This document shows positions 2,627-33,841 of a DNA stretch of 64,000 nucleotides, piece by piece; the stretch's first letter is position 1; the number at the start of each line of letters is the position of its first letter. The translations under genes and the position numbers were made by a program. The stretch comes from Schizochytrium sp. TIO01 (taxonomy: Eukaryota > Protista > Bigyra: Labyrinthulomycetes), in assembly GCA_004764695.1 (NCBI GenBank), contig SMSO01000036.1, positions 806,001-870,000 on the forward strand, in the 5' to 3' direction. Under the pieces are notes generated by a model. The model worked only from the letters and a program-made list of their open reading frames with translations, was not told the origin of the DNA and made no database searches.

Positions 2627-5600
2627 ATGTTGCGGACACGAACCAACTCGATTTCAATGCGCTCTTTGGTTATCGCCTTCGTTGCTTTCGCAGTCACAGT
2701 CGCCTCTTGCAATGGTGATAGGCCCACGCGTTTCTTCGATTCTCAAAGCACACCGGCATTTCCAGCTTGCTCGGCTAGTTATGCAACTCCCTGCGCCTTC
2801 AATAATGTTTATCGACTTGTTGAAAGAGTTAGCTCCTTAATTGAAGCATCGAGCAATTTAGAAAGTCTCTTTACATCAATCAACAATGCATCGGAAAACG
2901 TACAAGACGGATTTTTTTTTGCACCATATGTTTTTAACTCAACATCCATGCGATGTATTGCAAATGGGAGAGATATCTCTTTCTATAATTTGACGATTGA
3001 AGAGATTGCACAAAGCTTAGGTGTTACATCAGTGCAAGATGACCTTTCTAGTGAGATGCACTCTACTGCAGATGAATCAGAAGACGGATGGTTTAAATTT
3101 GTCTTCGTGTCAGAAGATTATGTAGGCGAGCCCATTGCTCACTTAGGCTATGCCAAGCAGGCTCAGGATTTTAATAACAACACCTACATTGTAATGGCTA
3201 GTCTAGCATACAGACTTCTTCCAAGAATGGATATTGATGCTTGTCCAACATCTGTAAATAGAAGGTGCAACATACAAAATGTCCGTTCCTTAGTTGGGGC
3301 AGCCCTCTACGAGGCTATGACTGCAGAGAGTGAAGCTTCACTTCGCGAAGTATGGAGCGAAATTACATTTCCTCGACCAGACGACATTACATTTCGTGAT
3401 CAATCATGGTATATCTTTGTTTTTGAATTTGGTGACGGCAACGATGGCGACTGCTACGCTCATCTCAATTATAATTGGATTCGATGGAATTTATACGGAA
3501 TCTCCAAACTATTTATCGAAGATGTGCAACAACAAGATGGTTCTGTCATTCATGAGCACTTTAGCGAAGCAGCGCTTCAGGGAGGAGGCTGGGTAAAGTA
3601 CAACTGGACAACTTCCCCATCAGTACCTGCTCTGCTGAAAGTGAGTTATGTGACTGGTGTGGAACTGTTTAACCGCAAGTACTATATCGGAGCAGGGTTT
3701 AATCACATGCGCGACCCTGTAAATGCAGGACCTGTCTGTAGCCAATGTTCGGCTAGCTATAGCAGCCCTTGTGCGATCGGCAATGTACTTTCGCTAAGCG
3801 CACATACTGAAGTTGAACTTCTTACAAAAGCTGAGGCAAACGTAGTTTTTACTCATATTAGCGAAGGCCAAGCATTCAAAATGGATGGTGGTTTTGGAAT
3901 TATCCTCGTTGATTACAACCAAACTGTTATGGCAGATAGTCTTTTCCCTGATAGTTTAAACCAGGATGCAGAGAGTTCCTTCGCAGAGCGCAGCATCCTG
4001 TTTGAATATTCCACTCATGAATCACTTATGGCGCTGGCTGATGGTGGTGGCGGTTGGATACAGTTATCTGGGATTGATGGCCACAGTGATTTTATTGCCT
4101 TTGTCAACAAAATCAGCAAGTTTGAGCGAAGCTACTACTTGCTCAATGGATATTACAATGAGCGTGCCCCCACTGTTGATGAATGTTCTGCAGAATATTC
4201 AGACGAGTGCAGTGAGATCAATGCAAAAGCCCTGGTCGGAGACGTAGTAACGTCCATTCAAGTTGCATCATCCGATTCAGAATTTACAAGTATTTTGGAA
4301 AGCATCAATACAGGTAAGAACTCTAGTTACTTTATCACGCCAAATTTCTATGCTATCGTGCTCGATAGCGATTTCAACCTACTTGCGCATGGTGATACCG
4401 ACTTATTTCAAACCTGGAACATATCAGTTCCTGATAGCTACATGTCCTTCGTCCAACAAGAAGAAGGGGTTTCATCTCTCGGAAATGATTTCGAGGCCGA
4501 ACTTCGCTCAGCAGCATTTAAAGTGGGTGGGGGCTTCGTTTCTTTAACATGGAACACACCTGAGCAAAACTTGGTCAAGACTGCCTACGTTCAAGCCGCA
4601 AAACGAGTGTCATCAACCACAGGAGCCAGCCTCACCTATTACGTTTTGACAATGTTCATTAATGCGCCTGCACCTACCTTGGACTCAGCTGGATGTCCAA
4701 CATATTCGTATGGTGTGAATCATAATGATGGTCTTCCAGTCCGATGCGAGTGCGGATTCTACTATATGCCTGAGTACTCAGTTGTCGAAAATGAAAATTG
4801 TGTTGAGACTTTTGTCAGCAACTATTCCATGACCTGCATTGCTGACCCAAGCAAGACCAGTATTGATGGAGTTAAGAATATTGCAATGGCACTAGGCATG
4901 ATCAATTGTCTATTTGCATTCGCTTGTATAATGTGGACTGTTGCTATGCGTCGACATGTAATTGTCAAGGCCTCGCAGCCAATGCTGCTTGTTCTTGTTG
5001 GGGTAGGCACGATTGTTTCATCCACTACAATATTTGTTATGGTCATTGATGATAAGGTCGGTCCACCAGCTGGAGAGGGAATAAATGATCAAGCAAACTG
5101 GGCATGCATGGCACAACCCTGGTTCTACGGCGCAGGCTTTGCAATTACGTATTGTAGCATGATCGTAAAACTTCGTCGCGTTGCAAAGGTTTTTAAAAGC
5201 GCAGTGAAAATGTCGAAGAAGGTTCGCGGTGTTTCCTTCAAGATGACATTGCTCATTTTGATGGGACTGTTGAGTGTTGAGTTCCTCATTTTAATCATTT
5301 GGACAACAAGCGATCCCTTGAAGTTTGTTCGCCCGGAAGAAAGCCCATTAAATGGCGCTTGCGAAAGTACAAATGCACGTACATTCCTGGAGCTCATGGC
5401 AGTTTATCACCTTATTCTTCTTTTTTACGGTGCCTATCTAAGTTATCGCTGCCGCAAGATGAATGGTGTCTTTGCAGAGACGAAGTACCTGAGTTTAGCT
5501 ATGCTTGGGAATCTCCAAGTTCTTTTGCTTGCTTTGCCTGTCATAGTTCTGACAGCTGATGATGCGGAAACCTCTATGTTTATTCGATCTATTGCTGTCT

Positions 5601-5815
5601 TTCTCAACGACTTTTCTACGACAGCTCTAATCTTTGGACCTAAGGTTTACTTTAGCATATTCGGAGCTCCTGCCGGATCTGGGGATGGAGGTTCCGTGTT
5701 TAAGTCAAGTGATCCTAAAAGCTCTGCCACAAACAAGACTAATCGCACAGCAATTGCGCCATCTAGCGTGGCTTTTCGTTCTTCAATGGTATCCAAGACT
5801 GAAGCAGACGAATAA
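2627..5815 (+). CDS. Class C (7tm_3, GABA-B-like) GPCR with signal peptide and four tandem Cache-like extracellular repeats
   Basis: 1062-aa single-exon ORF (alternative ATG at 2657) with signal peptide MRSLVIAFVAFAVTVASC. The C-terminal 7TM (~4874-5660) has class C motifs VIVKASQPMLL, CMAQPWFYGAGFAITY..MIVKLRRV, VFAETKYL and LIFGPK. Four ~150-aa repeats carry C-x7-C, Y-x-F-V, GGGW-x-x-Y-x-W and K-x-x-YV motifs. Confidence 0.85.
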   Translation: MLRTRTNSISMRSLVIAFVAFAVTVASCNGDRPTRFFDSQSTPAFPACSASYATPCAFNNVYRLVERVSSLIEASSNLESLFTSINNASENVQDGFFFAPYVFNSTSMRCIANGRDISFYNLTIEEIAQSLGVTSVQDDLSSEMHSTADESEDGWFKFVFVSEDYVGEPIAHLGYAKQAQDFNNNTYIVMASLAYRLLPRMDIDACPTSVNRRCNIQNVRSLVGAALYEAMTAESEASLREVWSEITFPRPDDITFRDQSWYIFVFEFGDGNDGDCYAHLNYNWIRWNLYGISKLFIEDVQQQDGSVIHEHFSEAALQGGGWVKYNWTTSPSVPALLKVSYVTGVELFNRKYYIGAGFNHMRDPVNAGPVCSQCSASYSSPCAIGNVLSLSAHTEVELLTKAEANVVFTHISEGQAFKMDGGFGIILVDYNQTVMADSLFPDSLNQDAESSFAERSILFEYSTHESLMALADGGGGWIQLSGIDGHSDFIAFVNKISKFERSYYLLNGYYNERAPTVDECSAEYSDECSEINAKALVGDVVTSIQVASSDSEFTSILESINTGKNSSYFITPNFYAIVLDSDFNLLAHGDTDLFQTWNISVPDSYMSFVQQEEGVSSLGNDFEAELRSAAFKVGGGFVSLTWNTPEQNLVKTAYVQAAKRVSSTTGASLTYYVLTMFINAPAPTLDSAGCPTYSYGVNHNDGLPVRCECGFYYMPEYSVVENENCVETFVSNYSMTCIADPSKTSIDGVKNIAMALGMINCLFAFACIMWTVAMRRHVIVKASQPMLLVLVGVGTIVSSTTIFVMVIDDKVGPPAGEGINDQANWACMAQPWFYGAGFAITYCSMIVKLRRVAKVFKSAVKMSKKVRGVSFKMTLLILMGLLSVEFLILIIWTTSDPLKFVRPEESPLNGACESTNARTFLELMAVYHLILLFYGAYLSYRCRKMNGVFAETKYLSLAMLGNLQVLLLALPVIVLTADDAETSMFIRSIAVFLNDFSTTALIFGPKVYFSIFGAPAGSGDGGSVFKSSDPKSSATNKTNRTAIAPSSVAFRSSMVSKTEADE

Positions 5816-32064: not shown

Positions 32065-32499
32065 ATATAATCCAAGGAAGCTAGTATTTTCAATTTTTAA
32101 TTTTCGCAAACAACTAAAATATGAACCTCTCCCTAATTTTTTTTAATTTTTTAGTCATGTAGGGTTGGTAAACAACAAGTTTTTGCGCCTCTTCTTGATG
32201 TTGAAGTGAGTGGGAAAAGATAATGGTAGGTTCAAAACCAGAGTATGATAAACGTTGCAAACTGAGACGAGCACCTGTGTGAAACAACATTAGAAAGATG
32301 AAGATTTTTATATTATAATTATTTCCCTGTGCTCCTCGCCTTTCAGCCTCATTTCCCTGCCCTTCATTCATCATAAAATTGCATCAGAAATCTCAAGTAA
32401 TTGAAGGTATTATCTACCTACCAACCAACCAACCTATTTAATACATATTAAAACTAGTAAATGGTTGTAGTTGGCTTTTCTTAGTCAGCACATACCAAT

Positions 32500-32635
32500 A
32501 CTACAAACTACTTCTAGTAGGCCTCTACTCGCAAGCATTTTAGAATTTAACCTCGCAAAACTTGCAGTTTCTATGGTGAGTTGGGGCTAAGGCCAATCGC
32601 AGATTTTAAACCAATTCGCGACTCAATGATAACTT
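32500..32635 (-). ncRNA. Candidate Fanzor omegaRNA scaffold / transposon right end (degenerate)
   Basis: Lies directly 3' of the Fanzor stop. Contains the hairpin AGTCGCGAATT-GGTTTAA-AATCTGCGATT (32623-32595), the GC-rich motif GCGATTGGCCTTAGCCCC (32600-32583), a small GCAA-GTT-TTGC hairpin and a repeated TTGCGAG. Boundaries are approximate. Confidence 0.4.
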
Positions 32636-33295
32636 CTAAATCATGTTTTCAGATAGGTAGCGCAAAAGGATGCCTCTGGCAGCGTGGACATCACAATCGA
32701 CTACGTGTGTGCATTTGGGACATTTAAAAACCTTGAATGTTCGGAGCTTGTCTACATTCATTGCATGGTGCCACCCACATTCAATGTATGGTTTTGAAGT
32801 GCCATCTCCTCTGCAAGTAACTTGTTTATATCACTGGAAGGGAGGAAGCTCGGCTTTGCGAATGAACTCTTATTGGAAGCCGACCTACGACACATCATTC
32901 GAGCTGTGTTGATTTTCATCCATCTTGTTAACTTGTTGAGTCTTCAAATTTAGGCATAGAAATAACACGGTAGTTTTCACAGAGCCAAAGTGCAAGCTTG
33001 CAGTGAATCCCGGTAGTGCAACAGTGGGCCCGTTGAAGTTGACCCCTCTACCGATGTCTTTGTAGACGGCGGCGGCAACTGAAGAGGCACGCTGGAGGTT
33101 ATCAAATTTGACATTTGAAATTCCCTTTTTGCTTGGCGGAGGACACTATAGCGTAGTTAATGGCAAGGTCAGTGCTGCGTTATTCGCGGCCACAGAAACA
33201 AACCGCAGCCATTGGTGCCCTCAATGTCGTCACTTGCGTATATGCGATTACCTCAGAGGAAGCGCCCGAAGGTCACTTGCTGAGACACCAAACTT
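32636..33295 (-). pseudogene. Decayed, internally deleted Fanzor2/IS607-TnpB-like RNA-guided nuclease gene
   Basis: Frameshifted minus-strand fragments occur in collinear order: SASDLRAL; HQWLRFVSVAANNAAL/TDLAINY; KFDNLQRA; RHR*RGQLQRA; IHCKLALWLCENYRVISMPKFE; KINTARMMC; FQ*EFIRKAE; TSKPYIECGWHH...KVFKCPKCTHVVDCDVHAARGILLRYLSENMI* (stop 32638-32636). Confidence 0.8.
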
Positions 33296-33841
33296 CTGGT
33301 TGAACTACTTTGATCATTTAAATTGAAGGTTTCAGTCACTTCTAGTGTTTGGAGCTTATTCCTCAGCCATTCCAGTTTCTTTACCCTCCACTCCTTAATA
33401 GTAAAGACCTAAACATTTTTTGTTTTATATATCATGTGAAATAGTCACGACCATTTGGAGGTTATATAAGTTCTAACATTTTCCTAGTAAGTACTTTTGC
33501 TCCATTTTTTTTTAAAAACAAAGTTAGACAAAATTAATTTTTAAAAATAAAAGAACGAATGGAACACAAGAACAGCAATAAGAACAGAATATGAAGAACA
33601 AAACAAGAATGAGAACAAAACAAGAAGAACAAAATAACGAGAGCAACTTCAAGGAGAAAAGTAAGCAGTACCCTACTACGATAGTAGTAGATGTCTGCCT
33701 ACCACTACCATGACAACATCATCGACGCCAACTACAATAGCGACGACTAGAACTTCAAGACAAGAGCGGCGCTCAAACAGAAACGTTTGACACACCCACT
33801 GAGGGAGCAGAACGGCGCTCAGCCGAGCGAGCACAAACAAG

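Follow-up and report, generated by a model that had tools for sequence, protein, structure and literature searches.

Genes and features of the locus

The DNA analysed here (hereafter the window) is a 64-kb stretch, G000:C35:806001-870000, of an assembly of 64 Mb (37 contigs). Its open reading frames (ORFs) are eukaryotic (PAN2, ArfGAP, Vps54/syndetin, ABC1 kinase, class C GPCR and a WD40 protein), and the element described below is thus encoded in a eukaryotic genome. Among named relatives, the ABC1 kinase is nearest to that of Hondaea fermentalgiana, with 68% identity, and it is also matched at 99% by a JGI protein and at 99% by an MMETSP transcript. This one protein points to a thraustochytrid as the host. 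The GPCR is a 1,062-residue ORF (window 2627-5815, plus strand) with a class C seven-transmembrane domain (PF00003, 133 bits) that is preceded by dCache_2 and sCache_2 sensor matches, which replace the Venus-flytrap domain.

Between the ArfGAP gene (PF01412) and the WD40 gene lies a transposon relic on the minus strand (32536-33494, approximately 959 bp). It is a copy of a short, internally deleted IS607-Fanzor2 family, as delimited by blastn, by alignments of its copies and by end profiles, the last of which place the left end at 33494 and the right end at 32536. A preliminary description, made from the letters of the window, had recognized a Fanzor2 fossil at 32636-33295. This span lies inside the relic but is too narrow at both ends. 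The identification as Fanzor2 holds, but the description overlooked both a remnant of the transposase gene tnpA and the fact that the internal deletion recurs in every copy tested.

The relic is composed of five parts, all on the minus strand. In the non-coding left end (33376-33494), homology with the left end of the intact elements found elsewhere in the genome, here represented by the copy L036, extends from position ~3805 of L036 onwards. This end is followed by the 5′ half of tnpA, which encodes a serine recombinase (33033-33375, codons ~1-124, located by tblastn). The start codon of this remnant has changed from ATG to CTG (33375-33373), and what is left of the Fanzor N-terminal domain overlaps this remnant in a frame shifted by one base. 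Next comes the deletion junction (33010-33032), at which blastn alignment leaves ~23 unaligned bases in place of ~1.23 kb (L036 ~4244-5471). The Fanzor2 C terminus (32639-33014) was delineated by tblastn and three-frame translation; it corresponds to codons 536-662 of a 662-codon frame (127 codons) and includes the helix preceding the canonical RuvC-II position, the site of the relocated catalytic glutamate, the zinc ribbon and RuvC-III. This remnant is split across three frames by frameshifts and contains at least three stops, and its C-terminal open stretch ends in a stop codon at 32636-32638. The 3′ non-coding part and right end (32536-32635) were placed by alignments and end profiles. Together with the last ~115 coding bases, the 3′ part is the counterpart of what is presumed to be the omega-RNA scaffold in the intact element.

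Homology and residues lost in the relic

Translation of the minus strand in three frames (window 32300-33700) yields all of the peptide fragments quoted in the preliminary description, broken by stops and frame changes and in the order given there, including IHCKLALWLCENYRVISMPKFE (33008-32943), KINTARMMC, FQ*EFIRKAE and TSKPYIECGWHH...KVFKCPKCTHVVDCDVHAARGILLRYL. The profile search that it had proposed gives a clear answer for the C-terminal stretch: window:32639-32830 (minus strand) scores 30.6 bits (E = 3.7e-7) against PF07282 (Cas12f1-like TNB, formerly OrfB_Zn_ribbon), above the curated Pfam cut-off of 26.3 bits. The match covers residues 10-54 of this stretch (window 32669-32803, minus strand), and the same domain is picked up by a six-frame PF07282 scan of the whole genome, at G000:C35:838669-838803. 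The stretch also has weak matches to the NCBIfam models guided_TnpB, IS200_TnpB and IS607_TnpB, at their extreme C termini. The fragments upstream of it give nothing significant in Pfam or NCBIfam on their own and were placed by comparison with the intact element. A weak NCBIfam transpos_IS607 match at window:33105-33179 (minus strand; E = 0.1) was later borne out as tnpA.

The comparison with intact proteins from the same genome was made by tblastn against the whole 64-kb window. Residues 9-124 of TnpA match 33355-33035 (E = 5e-8, several stops) and residues 11-127 of the overlapping Fanzor N-terminal frame match 33357-33034 (E = 3e-9, several stops), whereas the Fanzor C terminus is found in two overlapping pieces, residues 536-561 at 33014-32937 (E = 8e-8, 81% identity) and residues 544-662 at 32965-32639 (E = 7.5e-16). 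These matches, all on the minus strand, are significant and collinear and fall in the relic only; elsewhere in the window every E value exceeds 1. At the DNA level, the relic aligns with L036 in two blocks of ~67.5% identity each. The first (window 33412-33033, L036 3833-4243) contains the 5′ half of tnpA with part of the left end ahead of it, and the second (window 33009-32617, L036 5472-5874) runs from the Fanzor C terminus into the 3′ non-coding part. Between them, the deleted ~1.23 kb held most of the N-terminal domain, REC, WED and RuvC-I, which agrees with the earlier view that RuvC-I and most of WED are gone. The upstream fragments quoted in that view are present, but they come from the zone in which tnpA and the Fanzor N terminus overlap, and not from WED. 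TDLAINY and KFDNLQRA are read in the frame of tnpA, where TnpA has VIYARVSSAKQK and VGDLQRA, and HQWLRFVSVAANNAAL corresponds to LIAVPPAASNAAL in the Fanzor N-terminal frame that overlaps it.

Key residues have been lost in addition to the deletion. The relocated catalytic glutamate is replaced by glycine (CRGDGTSK in the relic, CQESYTSK in intact copies). The signature TSKxCxxCG had been cited for the zinc ribbon, but it is not intact here, as its first cysteine is a tyrosine (TSKPYIEC). The RD of RuvC-III reads CD in the relic. The motif D-X(125,275)-[TS][TS]-X-X-C4 zinc finger-X(5,50)-RD is thus absent from the relic. With its stops, frameshifts and missing catalytic and zinc-binding residues, the relic belongs to the Fanzor/TnpB superfamily as a pseudogene fragment that codes for nothing, and the copy is dead, as the preliminary description had held.

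Intact full-length elements

The same description had supposed that the lineage hosts, or hosted, Fanzor2 and that intact copies might be found elsewhere. The six-frame PF07282 search of the genome returned 43 matches, of which at least 17 loci lie in uninterrupted frames of 615-682 codons and score 54-55 bits. The intact elements, numbering at least 17, are 92-100% alike. Ten loci were compared together with their flanks. They share a unit of ~2.2 kb (L036:3754-5961) at 94-99% identity, outside of which the flanks are unrelated. Since intact copies exist, the consensus reconstruction that had been proposed was needless. Two of the weaker PF07282 matches (C13:2776650 and C35:2606339) were considered as a possible second Fanzor lineage and rejected, as both proved to be copies of the family described here that are truncated or have decayed.

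Each intact element carries two genes. The first (L036:3870-4568) encodes a TnpA of 232 residues with a Resolvase domain (PF00239, 72.5 bits, residues 83-216), ahead of which are weak MerR/HTH_17 matches (residues 28-66); this is the layout of an IS607-type TnpA and bears out the IS607 derivation proposed at the outset. The second is a Fanzor frame of 662 codons (L036:3862-5847), the first ATG of which, at 3994, gives a protein of 618 residues. This frame matches PF12323 (HTH_OrfB_IS605, 37 bits), PF01385 (weakly) and PF07282 (50 bits), and the NCBIfam model guided_TnpB at 94 bits; its scores for IS607_TnpB (61.7 bits) and for IS200_TnpB (59.8 bits) are not discriminating. The two genes overlap by 575 nucleotides, one base out of register (L036:3994-4568, equivalent to G000:C32:2840993-2841567). 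The N-terminal domain of the Fanzor protein is therefore overprinted on tnpA; it is conserved in relatives of 33-48% identity, in which, for example, W92, C106, W119 and W131 are invariant.

Among solved structures, the best match of the intact protein is chain P of 9b0l, the 'TnpB-like protein L79' of mimivirus (ApmFz2; E = 2.5e-18). Cas12m, Cas12f and TnpB chains follow at ~1e-6, and no Fanzor1 chain appears in this PDB search at E values up to 1. ApmFz2 has the catalytic triad D324, E467 and D501, in which the glutamate is shifted ~50 residues past its canonical site (PMC11832414). In the HMMER alignment, D416, E564 and D601 of the 618-residue protein align with these three residues. The canonical RuvC-II site is occupied by K513, in the sequence LPKFE, and E564, in QESYTSK, lies 51 residues further on. 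The LPKFE stretch, which had been taken for the RuvC-II signature, is therefore not the site of the catalytic glutamate. An alignment with nine relatives (33-48% identity) shows no variation at D416, E564 and D601 or at any of the four zinc cysteines. Intact copies also contain the complete motif that is missing from the relic, in the form of D416, T567-S568, C571/C574/C589/C594 and R600-D601. Together, the rearranged active site and the closest solved structure favour the assignment of the intact protein to Fanzor2, in keeping with the original naming of the relic. The intact proteins may perform RNA-guided cleavage.

Two complete MMETSP transcript ORFs (601 and 617 residues) belong to this family, one of which is 97% identical over its full length to the genomic copy L038. 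Transcription thus extends over the whole long ORF and takes in the N-terminal domain. The internal 1.15 kb of the element, which is the part missing from the short family, is present in ~20 copies of 91-100% identity, a few of 80-88% and a dozen fragments of 67-77%. This continuum from 67 to 100% among long copies points to long residence in the genome with continuing activity.

Three long copies share an insertion of ~294 bp (L039:3693-3986, L041:3940-4233 and L043:6767-7061) in the 5′ part of tnpA, at L036 3951/3952. The insertion cuts the tnpA frame to 169 codons and leaves a Fanzor frame of 665 codons open. These copies have multiplied despite a broken transposase gene, with the nuclease gene intact.

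A family of short copies

A DNA search with window:32500-33450 found at least 46 matching pieces at ~40 loci, with 69-77% identity to the relic. These counts are lower bounds, as 40 of 231 first-look candidates were scored. Thirty-four further copies align with the relic from about position 8 to about position 940 of its 959 bp. Among 35 aligned short copies, the median pairwise identity is 74% (range 68-83%), and the relic, with a median of 72%, is a typical member. Each short copy is ~86% identical to the majority state of the family. As 0.86 squared equals 0.74, the pairwise median, the divergence is star-like, which is the pattern expected if one burst was followed by neutral decay of each copy on its own. 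The majority-rule sequence, which was used for statistics only, shares 76-78% identity with the living long family and contains no frame of more than 122 codons; the founder of the short family was therefore unable to encode a complete TnpA or Fanzor.

The autonomous partner of that time survives only as a few fragments of 67-77% identity. Old fragments of the internal part in this range of identity lie at G000:C31:1840927-1841908, at G000:C7:183991-184837 and at about ten shorter places, and are probably the remains of autonomous partners that were active while the short family spread.

The ends of the short family were profiled from 27 left ends and 26 right ends. Conservation starts at TG/TACCTAT-GAAAACGTTAGAAC and stops at CTCTAAG/TG, the slash marking the junction. 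At the corresponding positions, the relic starts with GTAC-TTACTAG-GAAAATGTTAGAAC and ends with ...TTCTAAAATG. In the long family, the left end reads (C)AG/TA...ACAAAAAACGTT and the right end ...TCTAAG/AG. Comparison of the two ends revealed no terminal inverted repeats in the element, and the flanks are random directly outside TG...TG in the short family or AG...AG in the long family. The same 2-bp NG is thus found at both junctions, as expected from serine-recombinase crossover at a 2-bp core, and this dinucleotide would be the crossover core. Seven of the eight left junctions of long copies read CAG, making CAG (or NTG) a candidate TAM.

The 3′ module and transcription of the locus

The last 217 nucleotides of the intact element have a predicted folding energy of -57.2 kcal/mol (z = -2.89; 1 of 200 shuffled sequences folds as well), and the predicted structure comprises two hairpins, of 13 bp and 5 bp, and a terminal one around GCAAGUUUUGC. 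The corresponding 215 nucleotides of the short-family majority sequence fold with z = -2.64 and the same layout of hairpins. Out of 66 base pairs in the intact fold, the short-family majority retains 45 unchanged, has a one-sided change in 5 and a compensatory change in 2, and breaks 8, while the other 6 coincide with gaps in the alignment; the two compensatory pairs are weak covariation. An Rfam scan of the whole window at the gathering thresholds returned no match. When the short family is compared with the long one, conservation in the 3′ non-coding part does not exceed that in the coding parts (0.71-0.82), and for this reason the reading of the module as an omega-RNA draws on its predicted structure. 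On this basis, the 3′ module fits an omega-RNA scaffold that the short family would have kept when it was active. In the relic itself, the structure has been lost: its module folds no better than shuffled sequences (z = +1.32).

The relic and its flanks are present in sequencing runs from 11 studies under eight organism codes. In run X17, a contig extends from inside the ArfGAP gene to 32999, and in run X19, low-depth pieces cover 32455-33304, with none over 33334-33514. Both runs are probably RNA, a status that is guessed, and their contigs carry no information on strand or ends. In X19, the relic is covered at 1-4% of the depth of the ArfGAP contig. The coverage suggests that transcription of ArfGAP reads weakly through into the relic, in antisense.

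Two local features of the reads were also observed. In X19, a contig of 135 nucleotides, with a depth of ~6000 compared with 482 for the ArfGAP contig, shares 40 nucleotides with the tnpA remnant (window 33033-33072, the segment coding for YKDIG.GVNF), and read depth peaks at 32972-33152 in all four runs. The high depth at the tnpA remnant is likely to stem from words common to many other copies or their transcripts. At window 33490-33518, a contig from run X15 has several insertions of 1-10 nucleotides at or just outside the left end of the relic, in an A/T-rich flank; these differences are strain variation at the left junction.

These data bear on whether the relic has acquired a new use, with the relic or its 3′ module serving as a guide-RNA gene for the living Fanzor2 or as a functional part of the ArfGAP 3′ UTR. 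We consider such co-option very improbable. The short-family ancestor did keep a structured 3′ module, part of the relic is covered by the X17 and X19 contigs, and the insertion recurs across the 11 studies, all of which would suit a retained function. However, the module that would have to act has lost its fold, the coverage in X19 amounts to a few per cent of the ArfGAP depth, the RNA status of the runs is itself a guess, and the divergence of the relic from the majority sequence is typical of the other copies, as neutral decay predicts.

Origin of the relic

All 15 tested short copies (L001-L015, the relic included) share the same junction, at which L036 4227-4279 is joined to L036 5463-5500. 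A junction common to all tested copies indicates an old, amplified, non-autonomous family rather than decay in place. We therefore interpret the relic as a dead member of a non-autonomous family that derives, by internal deletion, from a Fanzor2-carrying IS607-type transposon, with a probability of about 0.92. The homology of the relic, the common junction, the star-like divergence and the existence of intact, transcribed relatives are the observations on which this interpretation builds.

The course of events would have been as follows. An ancestor of the short family lost ~1.23 kb, from the middle of tnpA to just before the RuvC-II region of Fanzor2, but both of its ends and the structured 3′ RNA module were kept. 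With its cis-acting ends retained, such a derivative could be mobilized in trans by the TnpA of full-length elements, and presumably was. It then reached at least ~40 loci in one old burst, followed by neutral decay of every copy, and one of these copies, the present relic, landed between the ArfGAP and WD40 genes.

The same remains could in principle have arisen from a full-length IS607-Fanzor2 element that inserted here and lost its middle later by an independent local deletion. Old transposon copies often suffer internal deletions, and the relic is old, with 67.5% identity to the living family. This account is contradicted by the junctions, which coincide to within ~35 bp in 15 of 15 copies on many contigs, as independent deletions would not, and by the copies aligning end to end as units of ~0.93-0.96 kb; we rate it marginally below co-option. 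A chance pattern of motifs, or a fragment of an integrated giant virus or other virus, can be dismissed as having next to no probability, because, although Fanzor2 is enriched in giant viruses (PMC10530073) and one relative of 45% identity is named after the chlorovirus gene A625R, the matches are in collinear order with E values down to 7.5e-16, and the relic is a discrete repeat of ~0.95 kb with defined ends that is dispersed over many chromosome-scale contigs and is here directly flanked by eukaryotic ArfGAP (PF01412) and WD40 genes, with no viral hallmark genes adjoining.

The interpretation of the relic as a dead copy of a non-autonomous derivative can be taken one step further. Still-active IS607-Fanzor2 elements, with their conserved N-terminal domain overprinted on tnpA, and a protein-less satellite family carrying omega-RNA, to which the relic would belong, may have formed a long-lived two-tier Fanzor2 system in the thraustochytrid, in which the satellites used TnpA and Fanzor2 in trans, being spread, and perhaps kept in place, by the proteins supplied. 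We hold this extension to be doubtful, with the odds clearly against it. If true, it would be a eukaryotic counterpart of the bacterial miniature insertion sequences that carry guide RNAs.

Relation to known systems

Short derivatives of TnpB-bearing insertion sequences of the IS200/IS605/IS607 types are known in bacteria, and these keep the ends and the omega-RNA region. The short family resembles them in that it keeps both ends and the 3′ module and was amplified without coding capacity of its own, presumably in dependence on the proteins of full-length copies. It differs from them in being eukaryotic, IS607-type and old, and its dependence in trans and its guide-RNA role are putative.

The activity and structure of Fanzor2 have been described (PMC10530073, PMC11832414). 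Like ApmFz2 (9B0L), the intact copies have the TnpB-like HTH/REC-WED-RuvC-zinc-finger layout, and an extra N-terminal domain that includes a basic, NLS-like stretch. In both, a lysine occupies the canonical RuvC-II site (LPKFE in the present protein and IGKLN in L79) and the catalytic glutamate lies ~50 residues downstream (E564, 51 residues after K513; E467 in ApmFz2). Both elements are accompanied by a serine-recombinase tnpA. Unlike ApmFz2, the protein is encoded in a cellular protist genome and not in a virus, it is ~100 residues longer (601-618 compared with 520 residues), and the candidate TAM inferred from its junctions is CAG or NTG, whereas that of ApmFz2 is GGG. The overprinting of the N-terminal domain on tnpA is a further difference from ApmFz2, and the window copy, unlike ApmFz2, is a dead fragment. 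The mimivirus Fanzor2 element has been described with inverted terminal repeats (PMC10530073), none of which were found here.

IS607-type elements with Fanzor2 are known from eukaryotes and viruses, for example, Phytophthora, Acanthamoeba and chloroviruses (Bao and Jurka 2013, PMC3627910). The species table of that study includes Phytophthora and other stramenopiles but no thraustochytrid. The elements described here are of the same type, have the C-terminal motif intact in the long copies and reside in a stramenopile host. They differ from those of PMC3627910 in that an old deletion derivative outnumbers the long copies in this genome. The literature searched, including the main texts of three Fanzor surveys, returned no match joining Fanzor, TnpB or IS607 with thraustochytrids. 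The transposon type is thus a known one, but it seems to be undescribed from this group of hosts, although thraustochytrid Fanzors may already be among the 3,655 proteins catalogued in PMC10530073.

The relic itself is functionally unimportant and its locus is ordinary. Its value is that of a pointer to the objects of interest, the intact elements elsewhere in the genome, with ~20 near-identical, open and transcribed Fanzor2 genes that have a complete active site. Thraustochytrids are industrially used and genetically tractable protists, and a compact, putatively RNA-guided nuclease that is native to them, with a presumed guide scaffold and a candidate TAM, is directly testable. The short family, in turn, is a natural record of the persistence of IS607-Fanzor2 in a eukaryote, including the burst of a coding-dead derivative.
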